DNA of 64,000 nucleotides from Basidiobolus meristosporus CBS 931.73. Its lineage: Eukaryota > Fungi > Basidiobolomycota. The position numbers and the translations under genes are program-made. The stretch is taken from NCBI GenBank assembly GCA_002104905.1, contig MCFE01000162.1, positions 1-64,000 on the forward strand, read 5' to 3'. A model generated the notes under the pieces. That model was not told where the DNA came from. It saw only the letters and a list, made by a program, of their open reading frames with translations, and ran no database searches. Positions 12,034 through 20,229 of this stretch are shown here, in pieces; positions within the stretch are counted from its first letter, which is position 1, and every line of letters begins with the position of its first letter.

Positions 12034-15000
12034 ATGCCTATCGATAAGAACAACAGGGAAGCCAGGTCAATTCACCTCTCTTCTCTCTACAAACACGATG
12101 CAGAGAAAAACGAGGCCACCAATAGTTCAAGTGGAATCAGTCATTTGACGAGACCTTTGCACACCGCCTATGAGCCGGAGGCCAGCCCTTCGCCTAAGCG
12201 GCAACGCAGAATGTCAGTCACTCGTGAGCAGACATCCCCTGGCGCTTTCGATCATAATACAAACCATGGCACCGAGGCCCGTGATCCAACTCCTATCCAA
12301 GATGTAGACGGTAGCCTTCCGATCTCCAGCAGATCTTCTGGGCCTACCCCTACTAGTAACATGTTCAGCGATAATAGCAGCAAAGTATCTAATGTAAATA
12401 ATAATGAAAACAGACCTGTTGCTCCAGCAGCTCACAGTGGTTCCTCCCAGGCTGAGGCAGGGAAACCAACCATAAAGAGGTTGATTATCAAGGGTTTCAA
12501 AGGTGAGTGAAGAGCACCAAACTTGGTTCGGTTGAAAGAAGTGAACTGGGGATTTAAGAGTCGCAACTAACTCGCGCTATATATGTATGCCCTAGTCAAA
12601 CCTAAATTACCGGAAAACTATGAGACAAAAACTTGGCAGAAGCTCAAAAATGCCGTCAAAGCAATTCATGAAAGTCAGCCAGTTCCTGACAGCTTAGAAG
12701 AATTGTATAAGGTTTGTGCTTATATCGGTTTTCATGCGCCGCCTCTCTTCTCATTGGAAATGTTGCAGGCTTGTGAGAACTTGTGTCATCACAAAATGGC
12801 AAACTCTTTGTACCGTAAACTCAAAGCAGTCTGCGAGGAACACAGCATCGAACAAATGAAAGCCCTGAAAAGGTACCCAGTTCATTCTTCCATTTCCACA
12901 ACAACACTTAGCACTAACCCACGCCAACCAGTAATGTCACGGCAAATGAGGCTTTCCTGACAACCACTGATAGTCACTGGAGAAGCTACTGTCGACAAAT
13001 GGTATGAAGTCCACCACTCAGACTCGCCTCCCGTCGTAGTGTTGCTCACACATCGCAATTCTAGATGATGATCAGGAGCATCTTTCTCTATCTCGATCGT
13101 ACGTATGTGCTCCAAACGTCTGGCCTGTTGTCATTGTGGTAAGTGAGAGATCATCAGATGAATGATAGGTCTGAAGGTAGCTAATCAGACTGGTGGATGA
13201 TAGGGACATGGGGCTGTGCTTGTTCAGAGAGCACGTCATGGATTCTAAGGAAATCTGGAAGAAAACCTTGGACGGCCTGCTATACCTGATAGAGAAAGAA
13301 AGATCCGGGGAATCGGTCAACCGAGCGATTCTCAAATCATTGTTGCGGATGCTGATGGACCTCGAAATGTACTCAAGTGGCTTCGAGGGGGCTTTCTTGG
13401 AATCCACCGAGCGTTTCTACCATAAAGCTGGCAATGTTCAGCTGCATGCGTTGGAGGTGTCGCGGTATCTCCTCTACGTCGAGCAGAAACTACAAGAAGA
13501 GAAACTGCGCGCTGTTCATTACTTGGACAAGGAGACTAGTAGGCCTCTGATAGATCTGGTTGAGAAGAAGCTTATACTGGCCCCCGCGCTGTTCCTTCTG
13601 GAGAAAGGCTTTGACGATTTAATGAATAGATACCAGAAGGATGATCTCGCTAGACTATACACATTACTTGCTCGAGTGAATCAGCTGCATCAGCTGAAGT
13701 CTTTCTTTGGGAGATATGTGAAGAAAACCGGACTCGAGATAGTGACCGATAGTAGCCGAGATAGCACAATGGTGCAAGACTTGCTTGATCTCAAGCGGAA
13801 ACTGGATAGTATTCTGGATGTCAGCTTCCAAAGTAACGAGAGCTTTTTCAACACAATGAAGGAGAGCTTTGAGGAATTCATCAACGTCCGACAGAACAAG
13901 CCAGCCGAGATGATCGCCAAGTTTGTTGACTCGAAACTTCGCTCTGGCAACAAGACTGCCACAGACGAAGAGCTGGAGAACATTTTGGACAACGTTCTGA
14001 TTCTATTTCGGTTTATCCAAGGCAAAGACGTGTTTGAGGCGTTCTACAAGCGCGATCTTGCCAAGCGGCTACTCCTCAACAAGAGCGCCTCCTTCGATGC
14101 AGAGAAGTCCATGCTTTCCAAGTTGAAGACGGAATGCGGTGCCAGCTTCACAAGCAAATTGGAGGGAATGTTCAAAGACATGGACGTTTCGCGCGACATC
14201 ATGGTCTCTTTCCGCCAAACCCAGAAATACAAGGAGTTCTGTAATAATATCGAGCTCAACGTATCGGTCCTAACGCAGGGATACTGGCCTACTTACTCTC
14301 CTCCGGAGATCACATTGCCCGAACAGGTAAGCCCTAATGACTACGGCTTGCGCTTTGCACAGAACGCCATTCTCAAACCATCCCTATAGATGGCCGAATA
14401 CCAAGAAGTATTCAAAACTTTTTATTTAAGCAAGCATCACGGCCGACGTTTGATGTGGCAACACTCGCTGGGCCACTGTATCTTGAAAGCTCACTTCCCG
14501 AAGGTGAGCAACTACGCCTTATACTTCACACGCCGGTCTCGGCACACTAACTTCGTTCGCAGGGTAAAAAGGAACTTTCGGTGTCATTGTACCAAGCCAT
14601 AATCCTGCTGCTCTTCAACGATGTTGCCGTCGAAACCAAGTTAAGCTACAAAGAAATCGCTGTGGCCACCAATATAGGTTCGCTGATGATTCGGATTGGC
14701 GTGGGCGCCCATTTGCTAACCTTTACTATGTAGAGCGGAGCGAATTAGATCGGACCTTACAATCATTAGCATGCGGCAAGGTTCGCGTGCTTACCAAATA
14801 CCCCAAGGGTCGAGAAATCGGAGAGACCGACTGCTTCTCTTTCAACAAGGACTTCACGGCACCACTGTTTAGGATCAGGATCAATGCAATCCAAATGAAG
14901 GAAACGGTAATCTCTTTGCATTGAAGGTTGTGCAGGATCCATGCTAACCTGCATATGTGTCAGGTTGAAGAAAACACGCACACCACAGAAAGAGTCTTTC

Positions 15001-15273
15001 ACGACCGCCAGTACCAAGTGGATGCCGCTATTGTGCGCATCATGAAGACTCGGAAGCAACTTAGCCACACTCTCCTAATGAACGAGCTTTTCGAGCTATT
15101 GCGATTCCCAGTCAAGGTAAGGGCCCGCCAAGCATCGCGAACTTCATTGGCTGACTTCGTCATCGGACAACCCGTAGGCGACCGATTTGAAGAAGCGCAT
15201 CGAATCTCTGATTGATCGAGAATACCTGGAGCGAAGCAAACTTGATGCAAGCGTGTATCAATATCTGGCTTAG
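12034..15273 (+). CDS. CUL4: Cullin-4 (CRL4 E3 ubiquitin ligase scaffold), multi-exon
   Basis: [23 protein letters not shown]; [52 protein letters not shown]; neddylation region [18 protein letters not shown]; C-terminus [22 protein letters not shown] with TAG at 15271-15273. Canonical GT-AG introns, e.g. 12503-12595. Confidence 0.93.
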
Positions 15274-16321: not shown

Positions 16322-18058
16322 ATGAATAATAAATCGTCTCCGTTGCGACTCAAATTCTCCCACCGAGGTGAAACCCACTTCGTCTTCGTCAAAGGTACCT
16401 GATTCTTCTCTTGCTCGGGTTTTCTTCCTTCGCTTCTCCGCTAACCACCCTTTCCGATCTCGAGCAGAAGAGCAGCTGAGTTTTCCTCGCATTGTTCAGG
16501 AGTTTCAAAAGGAATACGATGACTTTCAGCTGAACGACTACAAGCTGCTGTGGAAGGATTCGGAGGGAGACTGGATCACCATAACCGGTATATATTTACT
16601 CTCCCCCTTGCTCATCCTTCATTTCGCTGATCCGCGTTTGTTCCCCAAGAAAATAATGATGCCTGGAGATACCTCAACGAAGTCATTGAGCAGGGCCACA
16701 GAAGAATCCACGTCAAATCCCGGATCACCGACAACGTTTTCATGGTTGGTTCCACCACCATCCCTCGCCTACCAAGCGCCGCTAATCTGTGTATACATTG
16801 TAGGGCTCGAATCTGGAAAAAATCTTGACGGATCGTACCTGTGTCTCACGACTGATAGACAAATATTCCAAAGTCACATATTCCATGAGCGAGTTGAAAT
16901 CCTATCTGGTGGAGCTTGAGATTGTCACGAACATCGTTATTGTCACCAAACCCACCCCCGAGCTGGTGAAGCATACGAAGCTAGTTGCCACCTGGCTTCT
17001 AAACAAATACAAGAACCTCACCGTCTACGTTGGGGATACGTTCAAAGAGAATCCCGCCTTCAAGCAAGAAGCACTGGCCTCCGAGAACCCCGCCATCGTA
17101 AATAGGCTGAAGTTTTGGTCTCGACAAAACCTCCCCGACTATGTGGACCTGGCAGTGACTTTAGGCGGGGACGGAACTGTCCTCTACACGTCACTGCTGT
17201 TTCAGGGAAAGGTCCCGCCTATCCTCTCGTTCCATCTAGGATCCCTGGGATTCTTGACTGTATTCAACTTTGGCCAATTTCAAGATACCTTGAGCTACAT
17301 AATTGACAGCAAGTCCGTCCAAGTCAATCTGCGTATGAGGATCAAGTGTACACTGTATCAACGCATGGTCAACCGCTTAATGGAGAGTGAGAACACACCT
17401 CTCTACGGGTCAGGATTGGGCATGAGTGATCTAAGTCTGGATGATCTTGACGAAGACTCGTGCGCACTTACCAAGAGCGGTGTGTACCATGTGGTGAATG
17501 AACTTGTCGTGGATCGTGGAGCCAATCCAAACATGGTGATGCTGGAGCTGTTTGTGGACAACATACATCTGACTACTGTGCTAGCGGACGGTTTAGTCAT
17601 AGCTACGGCAACGGGGTCCACTGCATACTCGCTTTCTGCCGGCGGCTCCCTGATCCACCCCGAGATGTACGCCATCCTTGTCACCCAGATCTGCCCTCAT
17701 ACTCTCACATGCCGTCCAATGGTCATTCCCGGCTACAAGGAGCTAAGAATATGCGTGCCGTCCCAGGCCCGAAGCACAGCATGGGTTCGTTACATCGTTT
17801 ATTGTTATAGTGCCGCATGGAACTTCAGATGCTAACCACGAAAAATCTCTCTCCACACAGGCATCGTTCGATGGGCACCATCGGGTAGAGCTGAATCGGG
17901 GGGATTCGATCACCATCACTGCATCCAACTTCCCGCTCCCATCGATATGCAAAGATGATCAATCTAAAGACTGGTTTAATGGGCTACGGCGAGTGTTGAA
18001 CTGGAACGAGAGAATTCCCCAGAAGATGTTTCACCCAAGTTCGTGGGACTTCGAGTGA
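16322..18058 (+). CDS. NAD(H) kinase with predicted N-terminal PB1 domain (5 exons: 16322-16394, 16468-16587, 16650-16744, 16804-17784, 17861-18058)
   Basis: NADK motifs LGGDGT, VVNE, ADG..ATATGSTAYSLSAGG, ICPHTL, ASFDG and WNER. Upstream exons joined by GT-AG introns with ctaac/gctga/gctaa branch sites encode a PB1-like sequence in frame. The kinase call is firm; the fusion depends on predicted splicing. Confidence 0.88.
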
Positions 18059-20229
18059 TTGGGAGTGACACTGGATTGGATCCCGCGGCCAATCATCACC
18101 CCAACGCTCACCTCACCGCCCATCGCCCACCACTCACCACTCACCACTCAATGCATCACCACTGGATCCACTCTCGGCACCATTTGTATTTATGTTATGA
18201 GCAAGAACACGTATGATCGTATCGATGTAATTAGTATATTTCAGATCTCTTGTTCATGTGAATGTCAATAGATCTTTCCTTTCGTCATCAACCACACCGT
18301 AGCCCACAGTTCTATTACACATGTCAAGCCACACACACAAACACACCCACTGACATTCCAGCTGAAGATTAAACACTAGCGCATCCAACAGTATTCCATG
18401 ATCTGTACCTGCGTATCCAGAGCCCTCGGATCTCGAGGTGATTTCGTGGCTAATATGACATTTCCCATAAACCTCCCCGACCCAACCGGACTCTAGGCTA
18501 GGATGGGATACTGAGGGAGCATGCGTCTTGATTCACGGGGTTGCCAGGAAGCGTTGCACCTCAATCAGGTTGAGTGGATCGATGGGACGACTTGGAGGGG
18601 ATGGTGCAAGCTCGGGCCTGTCAGGATAGGCGGACGCGGTGATTGGGTTGGGGCGCGGAAGGAGTTAGGCTATGTTGTGCGCCAACGGTGGTCTCATTGA
18701 TCTATCACGGATTCCCCTCGAGCTCCTGTTCCGTTTACCCATGATTGGGGGCGATGGATTGGCCCGCAGTTTCGGGGGATCTCTGCACACACTTTCCGAA
18801 ATCGGGGTATCATTCCAAATCCAAATCCACATCCACATCCAAACAGATAGGTGTGTTGGGTGAGAAGAATCTGGCCTTCCGCAGTGAGCATCTGGGTGGT
18901 CGTGTCTTTCGTAATCGTGCTTATCAATGGACGATTGCGTGTCTTCACAGAACCAACGACGCTGGGGAGAAGTGTCCCATCCTGTCCTAAGCGGAAATGG
19001 CCCGGGTGGAGATAAGGGCGTTTACCCGGCAAGCGGTGGACAACCATTCCTCAAACGGGCTTTGATCCAAGAGCCCACGACAGTCTCCCTTGCGGTGCGA
19101 TTTCCTTGTGCATGTCCCGGTGACTGCCACGTAGAGTCAATGGTCACCCTGAGCACAGATGTAGTGTAGCACCTGCCAACATGGAATCGCCGTGATAAAC
19201 GTCGGTTTGGCTTGGTGGCATAAATCCCACCTAGCTGAGATAAACCACTGGTTTCCAGCGCGCGTGAGCGAATGGCATATCCACGGTGTACTGGAGCAGA
19301 GTTGCTTGTGATGCCAGCACGAGACAAACTTGGTATACAGGGCGGGTTCCATGGGCTTGTCTACTGGGCGTATCGGTCGTGTTCTCAGGAATCCATCCGT
19401 GCTGCGGAATGTACCCTCAAAGCACTCGACGCGCATACAGTGCTCCAAACAAGCATGCCAGCCGTAGATCCTCTTGGATGATTTCCCTCTTTCATCGATA
19501 GGCCAACCCAAGTTGGCGAGCCACTATTTAGATCAGGCAGAAGCTTGCCATATTCAGAGATGAGCCAGGAAATCCAGGAAATCCAGTCCAGCCACACGTG
19601 AACATTTAGTATGCCTCTGTAGGGGCTGGTGACCTAGGAAAGCTGATGTCCGCGGGGAGCTCCTGAACATGGTGTGTCTAGCAAACAAGAATCTCCCCTC
19701 AAGGCGATGCCGTAGTAAGGTGTCCCACATCAGCTCCCAATAAATACTTCAGGCTGGATGTATGAAACCAATCTATATGTATCACACGGATCCACATCCC
19801 TATTTCCGGTTTGATTCAATATGACTGACTCAACGGGCAAATCAAATCGATTAAATGATCCCTTTTACAGGCGTCTACGTCAGTGACTTCACCATTATGC
19901 CCTCGTACATTTGGACCTCCCGCTGACATCCGCATTTAAGTCTTTCTCTAGTCTAACATATGCAATCTTTCCCAGTTGCTGCTGCCAACCCTCTGCAAAA
20001 CCTTATCTCTTCTTTGTGATAGCCACACCCCCCGTCACCACCACCCGCAACTTTTGGAAGCCTACCCAGTGCCTACTGCGGAACACCCACCCCACCCCCC
20101 TCCCACCTAACCCATCCTTAACTGTGCGATAACCTACCTAAGCCACCTTCCTCAATAACCTAACAAGCGCGCCTAGTCAAGCTGACCAAAACAGCCAACC
20201 ACGCACTGTGAGCAACCCAGTGTCCACAC

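Follow-up and report, generated by a model that had tools for sequence, protein, structure and literature searches.

The stretch of 64,000 nucleotides analysed here (positions 1 to 64,000 of contig MCFE01000162.1, assembly GCA_002104905.1; hereafter the window) comes from the genome of Basidiobolus meristosporus CBS 931.73 and carries a gene that, judged by its sequence, encodes a cytosolic-type NAD kinase (NADK) with an N-terminal PB1 domain of ~90 residues. The domain and the kinase are very probably parts of one fused gene product, and comparison across genomes identifies the gene as an uncharacterised PB1-NADK paralog conserved among early-diverging fungi. To our knowledge, cells have no route to NADP(H) other than NAD kinase. 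Work on its control has so far dealt with Akt-dependent phosphorylation in animals, with calmodulin in plants and with activation by lipids in neutrophils, and a conserved PB1 domain with two binding faces on the enzyme may point to assembly or scaffolding as a different control principle. Among the lineages that possess the PB1-NADK are ones of importance to lipid biotechnology (Mortierella), to mycorrhiza (Rhizophagus) and to disease of plants or animals (Synchytrium, Basidiobolus).

Structure of the PB1-NADK gene

The gene is read as five exons, with the protein features assigned to them being predictions:

16322–18058 (+), PB1-NADK gene; five exons, coding sequence of 1467 nt (488 codons)
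16322–16394 (+), exon 1; start ATG, PB1 strands beta-1 and beta-2
16352–16354, in exon 1; codon AAA of K11, the conserved beta-1 Lys
16395–16467 (+), intron 1; 73 nt, phase 1, GTACCT...CAG, CTAAC branch-like site
16468–16587 (+), exon 2; PB1 alpha-1, beta-3 and beta-4, with the OPCA core D-S-E-G-D at 16557–16571
16588–16649 (+), intron 2; 62 nt, phase 1, GTATAT...AAG, CTGAT branch-like site
16650–16744 (+), exon 3; last part of the OPCA motif (Asp codon 16658–16660), PB1 alpha-2 and beta-5, start of the linker
16745–16803 (+), intron 3; 59 nt, phase 0, GTTGGT...TAG, CTAAT branch-like site
16804–17784 (+), exon 4; linker, pre-kinase helix, NAD kinase N-domain and most of the C-domain
16804–16884 (+), part of exon 4 with the linker and the pre-kinase helix; ATG-free
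17785–17860 (+), intron 4; 76 nt, phase 0, GTTCGT...CAG, CTAAC branch-like site
17861–18058 (+), exon 5; rest of the NAD kinase C-domain, C-terminal tail, stop TGA at 18056–18058

All four introns are bordered by GT..AG, measure 59–76 nt and have branch-like sites near the acceptor, and the joins of exons 1 and 2 and of exons 2 and 3 each pass through a split GAA (Glu) codon. The ATG of exon 1 is the first one past an in-frame stop, and the B. ranarum ortholog starts at the same place. Exons 1–3 had been proposed by an initial annotation of this DNA; reading and translating the sequence reproduced their placement, and the three translations, joined through the two split codons, exactly match the N-terminal peptide that the annotation had quoted. 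The donor of intron 3 could instead lie three codons further 5', where GACAAC precedes an in-frame GT, and the paralog lineage uses the shorter form. The junction at intron 4 can be seen in the public B. meristosporus protein P0001, where it falls between ...STAW and ASFDG.

The translation of the kinase exon is 100% identical to this public protein, deposited as 'ATP-NAD kinase [Basidiobolus meristosporus CBS 931.73]' (365 aa), the model of which starts at ATG 16885 inside exon 4 and is devoid of the PB1 domain. A second NADK locus of the same genome (L002:2340-4116; contig MCFE01000314.1 of the same assembly), orthologous to B. ranarum K7432_002963 (P0002), carries three PB1 exons, intact but absent from the annotation, at the same positions as in the window gene and 5' of its model; this model (P0004, 353 aa) is flagged as partial at the 5' end. 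Read in this way, both B. meristosporus NADK models lack their 5' part, including the PB1 domain, and the model of the window gene needs a 5' extension.

Evidence for a single gene

The evidence for splicing is comparative, drawing on orthologs, the paralog locus, codon positions and HMM matches of individual exons. The ortholog from B. ranarum, K7432_007436 (P0003), is annotated as a single protein of 490 aa with exon boundaries identical to those of the window gene, and the peptide encoded by exons 1–3 aligns position by position with the start of that protein. When the window is compared with the locus of this ortholog (L001), the PB1 exons show 16, 7 and 57 differences at codon positions 1, 2 and 3, respectively (93 whole codons, chi-square p 3e-12), and the pattern in the kinase exons is similar (45/21/191 and 6/3/33). 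The introns are 56–62% identical and unequal in length between the two loci, with GT..AG kept; the GT..AG of intron 1 occupies a position common to L001 and to the second B. meristosporus locus, the intron differing there in length and sequence. A family HMM built from non-Basidiobolus relatives only is matched by each of the first three exons alone, namely at positions 3–21 by exon 1 (E 2e-5), 24–60 by exon 2 (E 2e-13) and 68–92 by exon 3 (E 9e-5), that is, in colinear order. Because of these separate colinear matches, combined with the codon-position bias against B. ranarum, the three-exon PB1 reading goes beyond chance, and the substitution pattern in the comparison shows the PB1-NADK architecture as one under purifying selection. 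The view of the initial annotation that the upstream exons belong to the kinase gene is thus borne out by the ortholog model, the codon-position bias and the exon-wise HMM matches.

The last three bases of intron 3, immediately 5' of exon 4, form a TAG codon in the kinase frame; the 27 codons of 16804–16884 in this frame include no ATG, and the 3' part of the segment is conserved (R-T-C-V-S-R-L-I-D-K-Y-S-K-V-T-Y-S). Exon 4, so read, cannot serve as a stand-alone start. Retention of intron 3 would lead, by a reading of the sequence, to an in-frame stop (TGA, 16826–16828). A single exon spanning both parts was sought in B. ranarum, Linnemannia and two Synchytrium species but not found, each of them having an intron at the PB1/kinase junction or close to it; it is this boundary intron, present in every lineage examined, that leaves residual doubt on the fusion.

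Switching between isoforms via ATG 16885, as envisaged by the initial annotation, is unsupported. The position is occupied by Leu in P0003 and by Ile in P0002 and at the second B. meristosporus locus, and in a full-length model of the ortholog it is predicted to lie within a conserved helix (residues 109–126) that leads into the kinase fold and would be truncated by such a start. A PB1-less isoform was, therefore, rejected as a conserved feature of the family.

Identity and fold of the N-terminal domain

The assignment of the N-terminal domain to PB1 by Pfam and by fold was made on the ortholog P0003 (~80% identical) and on single exons from the window. With the curated cut-off of the Pfam PB1 family (PF00564) at 23.6 bits, P0003 scores above it with 25.7 bits, and exon 2 of the window alone falls below it with 17.5 bits. 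The other relatives score 23.3 (P0029), 20.3 (P0002) or 14–16 bits; most are hence below the cut-off (14–23 bits), yet the match always covers the same N-terminal 60–80 residues. An AlphaFold2 model of P0003:1-98, based on an alignment of 28 sequences, has a pLDDT of 92.2 and is predicted to have the beta-beta-alpha-beta-beta-alpha-beta order of a beta-grasp (E6-13, E16-23, H29-39, E48-53, E59-62, H67-77, E82-89). The six best Foldseek matches of this model in the PDB are all PB1 domains (TM 0.57–0.75), specifically those of human and plant NBR1, the p62/PKC-zeta complex and PKC-iota/Par6; they are followed by the PB1 domains of p40/p67phox, MEKK and Cdc24, with ubiquitin, UBX and Ras-binding beta-grasps being slightly weaker. 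When the family profile was compared with solved structures, the PB1 domain of Cdc24 came out best (E 1e-3), and NBR1 PB1 chains were also matched. The weaker profile matches in an exhaustive search described below are plant NLP proteins and a stramenopile NBR1-like protein, all with a strong Pfam PB1 match. The initial annotation had called this domain PB1 and had proposed to look for an HMM or a structural match; both were obtained on the ortholog, and its Pfam result together with the predicted fold supports the call.

Interaction faces of the PB1 domain

PB1 domains that chain possess a basic (type II) and an acidic (type I) face, and the window gene has recognisable motifs of both. The former is represented by L-R-L-K-F, the Lys of which is K11; the equivalent residue lies on strand E6-13 of the ortholog model, and of 27 sequences, 25 have K and two have R at this basic position of beta-1. 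The latter is represented by W-K-D-S-E-G-D-W-I-T-I-T-E-N-N-D, the OPCA motif (16557–16660), which spans intron 2. With the motif defined as D-x-D/E-G-D-x8-D/E after beta-3, the window has D-S-E-G-D-x8-D. Across the alignment, the successive OPCA positions are D (27/28), D/E (26/28), G (18/28) and D/E (24/28), with an acidic run following. In Spizellomycetales the core is degraded, reading D-G-x-x and being one residue short, so that the acidic face, as far as these motifs reveal it, is not universal in PB1-NADKs. The beta-1 Lys and the exact OPCA motif in the window, together with their conservation across phyla, agree with the earlier proposal that both binding faces are present.

Kinase part and linker

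Exons 4–5 are predicted to encode a complete NAD kinase. Exon 4 matches both NAD_kinase (PF01513; 74.5 bits, cut-off 25.5) and NAD_kinase_C (PF20143; 98 bits, cut-off 23.7), and the catalytic motifs are intact, i.e. GGDG (17164–17175), NELVVDRG (17497–17520) and TGSTAYSLSAGG (17611–17646); the GGDG, NE and Gly-rich (TGSTAYxxSAGG) columns show little or no variation in the family alignment. In the full-length ortholog model (pTM 0.69), the PB1 domain and the kinase are predicted confidently and the linker with a pLDDT of 54–60, in the order PB1 domain, flexible linker (~15–20 residues), helix, kinase.

A variable insert (window 17380–17470) lies between the N- and C-domains of the kinase; it is acidic here (SDLSLDDLDEDSC), has extra cysteines (C-x-L-C...C) in B. 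ranarum as well as in the paralog lineage, and consists of ~100 low-complexity residues in Mortierellomycota. In the ortholog model this insert (residues 290–316) has a pLDDT below 50.

Distribution and origin of the PB1-NADK family

A local HMM of the PB1 module, run on the best 120 NADK matches, found the module on 35 of them. The carriers are Basidiobolus, many Mortierellomycota, Glomeromycota, Synchytrium, Spizellomycetales, Syncephalis and Calcarisporiella, so that, by group, the PB1-NADK is spread over Chytridiomycota, Zoopagomycota, Mortierellomycota, Glomeromycota and Calcarisporiella; no PB1 domain was found on an NADK from the sampled Dikarya or Mucorales among these 120 matches. The search for PB1 plus NAD kinase across fungi suggested by the initial annotation thus recovers the architecture in several non-Dikarya lineages. 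In a tree inferred by a quick method from the kinase columns only, which is unrooted and includes several long branches flagged as such, all 34 clear PB1 rows fall inside one clade of 51 rows (SH-aLRT 100). The PB1-less rows of this clade are mostly partial or N-terminally short models, and the other 66 rows, all lacking the PB1 domain, represent all Dikarya (including the Yef1-type proteins), Mucorales and a second paralog of Glomeromycota and Mortierellomycota. The simplest reading of this pattern is that the PB1-NADK would be one old paralog that was later lost in some lineages.

Two proteins branching within the PB1-NADK clade, P0051 from Chytridium lagenaria and P0072 from Dinochytrium, are without a PB1 domain. 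The N-terminus of the former is a basic Ser/Arg-rich stretch resembling an organelle-targeting peptide. The absence of PB1 in the two proteins may reflect a domain swap or merely a different gene model.

An exhaustive profile search of 1.84 billion representatives returned just 23 proteins at E<=1e-3, and the matches checked at E<=1e-10 are fungal NADKs, their fragments or unnamed short environmental proteins; no non-fungal PB1-NADK was found in this search. A word-index search with the PB1 part of P0003, an insensitive method, matched only two B. ranarum proteins.

Relation to known PB1 proteins and NAD kinases

The literature searched yielded nothing that links a PB1 domain (or PB1) with NAD kinase (or NADK), nor anything relevant on NAD kinase in Mortierella. 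An evolutionary survey of PB1 domains that included 12 fungal proteomes recognised the fungal families Bem1, Cdc24, Mug70/CBS and NoxR plus two singletons, and NADK is not among them (PMC7051960). The UniRef name of the B. ranarum protein P0003 and of the Linnemannia protein P0009 is nevertheless 'PB1 domain-containing protein'. The initial annotation had known of no characterised PB1-NADK; this holds for the literature searched, but the architecture itself was already visible in UniRef, and the PB1-NADK is, therefore, new to the literature and not to the databases.

The closest studied NAD kinases, Utr1 and Yef1 from S. cerevisiae, share with the window protein, as do their Dikarya orthologs, the combination of PF01513 and PF20143, the GGDG, NE and Gly-rich motifs and ~42–44% identity in the kinase; they differ in forming a sister clade without PB1 and in having N-termini unrelated to the PB1 module. 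The (co-)orthologs from B. ranarum (K7432_007436, K7432_002963), Linnemannia, Mortierella, Rhizophagus and Synchytrium exhibit the same PB1-linker-NADK layout and bear automatic annotation only ('hypothetical protein', 'PB1 domain-containing protein'), whereas the B. meristosporus entries are without the PB1 exons.

Like the PB1-NADK, the type I/II proteins p62/SQSTM1, NBR1, plant ARF and Aux/IAA have a beta-grasp with the beta-1 Lys and the OPCA motif in one domain. In those proteins, however, PB1 is attached to autophagy receptors or transcription factors rather than to a metabolic enzyme, the sequence identity between p62/NBR1-type PB1 domains and that of the PB1-NADK is just 13–25%, and self-assembly is known there, whereas the domain discussed here is known from sequence and a model. 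With Bem1, Cdc24, NoxR and Mug70/CBS the PB1-NADK has the PB1 superfamily in common, Cdc24 being the best sequence-profile match among solved structures. The NADK-linked PB1 domain can be regarded as a further fungal family beside Bem1, Cdc24, NoxR and Mug70, one that is confined to non-Dikarya lineages and adds to those covered by the main evolutionary survey of the domain (PMC7051960).

Possible role of the PB1 domain

The PB1 domain of the NADK may be a protein–protein docking module. A PB1 domain that has both faces can form chains by front-to-back contacts, as is the case in p62, NBR1 and ARF, and NAD kinases are homo-oligomers. A two-faced PB1 domain on each subunit of an oligomeric NADK would make the enzyme multivalent and capable of higher-order assembly: front-to-back PB1 self-association, as in p62/NBR1, would link the kinase oligomers with each other, and the resulting assembly would concentrate or regulate NADP+ synthesis. 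By analogy with these proteins, we lean towards a PB1-NADK gene whose PB1 domain self-associates front to back into higher-order assemblies as the best explanation of the conserved features, although our confidence in it is only moderate. Self-association is the most economical mechanism because both faces are kept across phyla and NADKs are homo-oligomeric, and it is favoured over binding to a single heterotypic partner because the latter needs just one face. A bolder version, which we put forward tentatively, is that the PB1-NADK is a self-polymerising enzyme forming filaments or condensates by which coenocytic early-diverging fungi would switch NADP+ synthesis or localise it, and that it represents a fifth fungal PB1 family, lost by Dikarya and Mucorales.

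Alternatively, as the initial annotation had first suggested, the PB1 domain might recruit the kinase to a different PB1 protein, such as Bem1, Cdc24, NoxR, an NBR1-like protein or CBS/Mug70, so that NADP(H) would be made at the polarity or NADPH-oxidase site. The affinity of the family profile to the PB1 domain of Cdc24 described above would fit such docking, as would the binding of Bem1 and Cdc24 to NoxR via PB1 in filamentous fungi, cited in the PB1 survey (PMC7051960), and the functional coupling of NADK activity to NADPH-oxidase bursts in plants and neutrophils, mentioned in two further sources (10.1101/521658; PMC13743754). However, both faces are conserved where one partner would require one, and the distribution of the fusion departs from that of Nox: Rhizopus is without Nox but with NoxR and Dikarya have both (PMC4206789), and a comparison of Nox co-distribution with the PB1-NADK fusion gave no correspondence, given that the Nox-bearing Dikarya are without the fusion. 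We regard recruitment by a heterotypic partner as the nearest alternative, though clearly less probable than self-association.

It is still less probable that the domain acts as an intramolecular regulator, with the beta-grasp folding back on the kinase or sensing a ligand or modification, and tunes the activity without any PB1–PB1 binding. Eukaryotic NADKs commonly carry N-terminal regulatory extensions, and the N-terminal region of the animal NADK is inhibitory, which provides an analogue. A further one is the contact between the PB1 and PX domains of p40phox, a non-canonical intramolecular PB1 contact (PMC7051960), and the Foldseek matches to other beta-grasps (ubiquitin, UBX and Ras-binding domains) are only slightly weaker than those to PB1 domains. 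Conservation is, however, centred on the two canonical PB1 interaction motifs, and the model, with a linker predicted to be flexible and a pTM of 0.69, gives no indication of confident docking of the domain onto the kinase.

Finally, two separate genes, a small PB1-only one upstream of a PB1-less kinase starting at ATG 16885, with the fused models elsewhere being annotation errors, would be compatible with the start of the public model P0001, the stop met by read-through into intron 3 and the intron between PB1 and kinase in every lineage examined, but we regard this as very improbable in view of the merely 59 nt between exons 3 and 4, the ATG-free segment 16804–16884, which is in the kinase frame, conserved in its 3' part and preceded by an in-frame TAG, the non-conserved Met at 16885 inside a predicted helix, the 5'-partial flag of the second B. 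meristosporus model, the presence of the PB1 module on NADKs annotated independently in several projects and phyla, and its occurrence on no other named protein type among the matches checked at E<=1e-10 from the 1.84 billion representatives.

Genomic surroundings

A cullin gene (Cullin_Nedd8 domain, E 2e-13; window 14928–15215, + strand) ends ~1.1 kb 5' of the NADK start. This cullin–NADK order recurs in B. ranarum (cullin at L001:1-1672) and at the second B. meristosporus locus (cullin at L002:1-1842). With all three NADK loci located downstream of a cullin gene, they appear to belong to duplicated segments, and the shared order indicates a segmental or whole-genome duplication that would be older than the split of B. 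meristosporus and B. ranarum. On the other side of the gene, the 3' flank (window 18090–18160) includes a short tract of repeats resembling CACCACTCAC (CCACTCACCACTCACCACTC).
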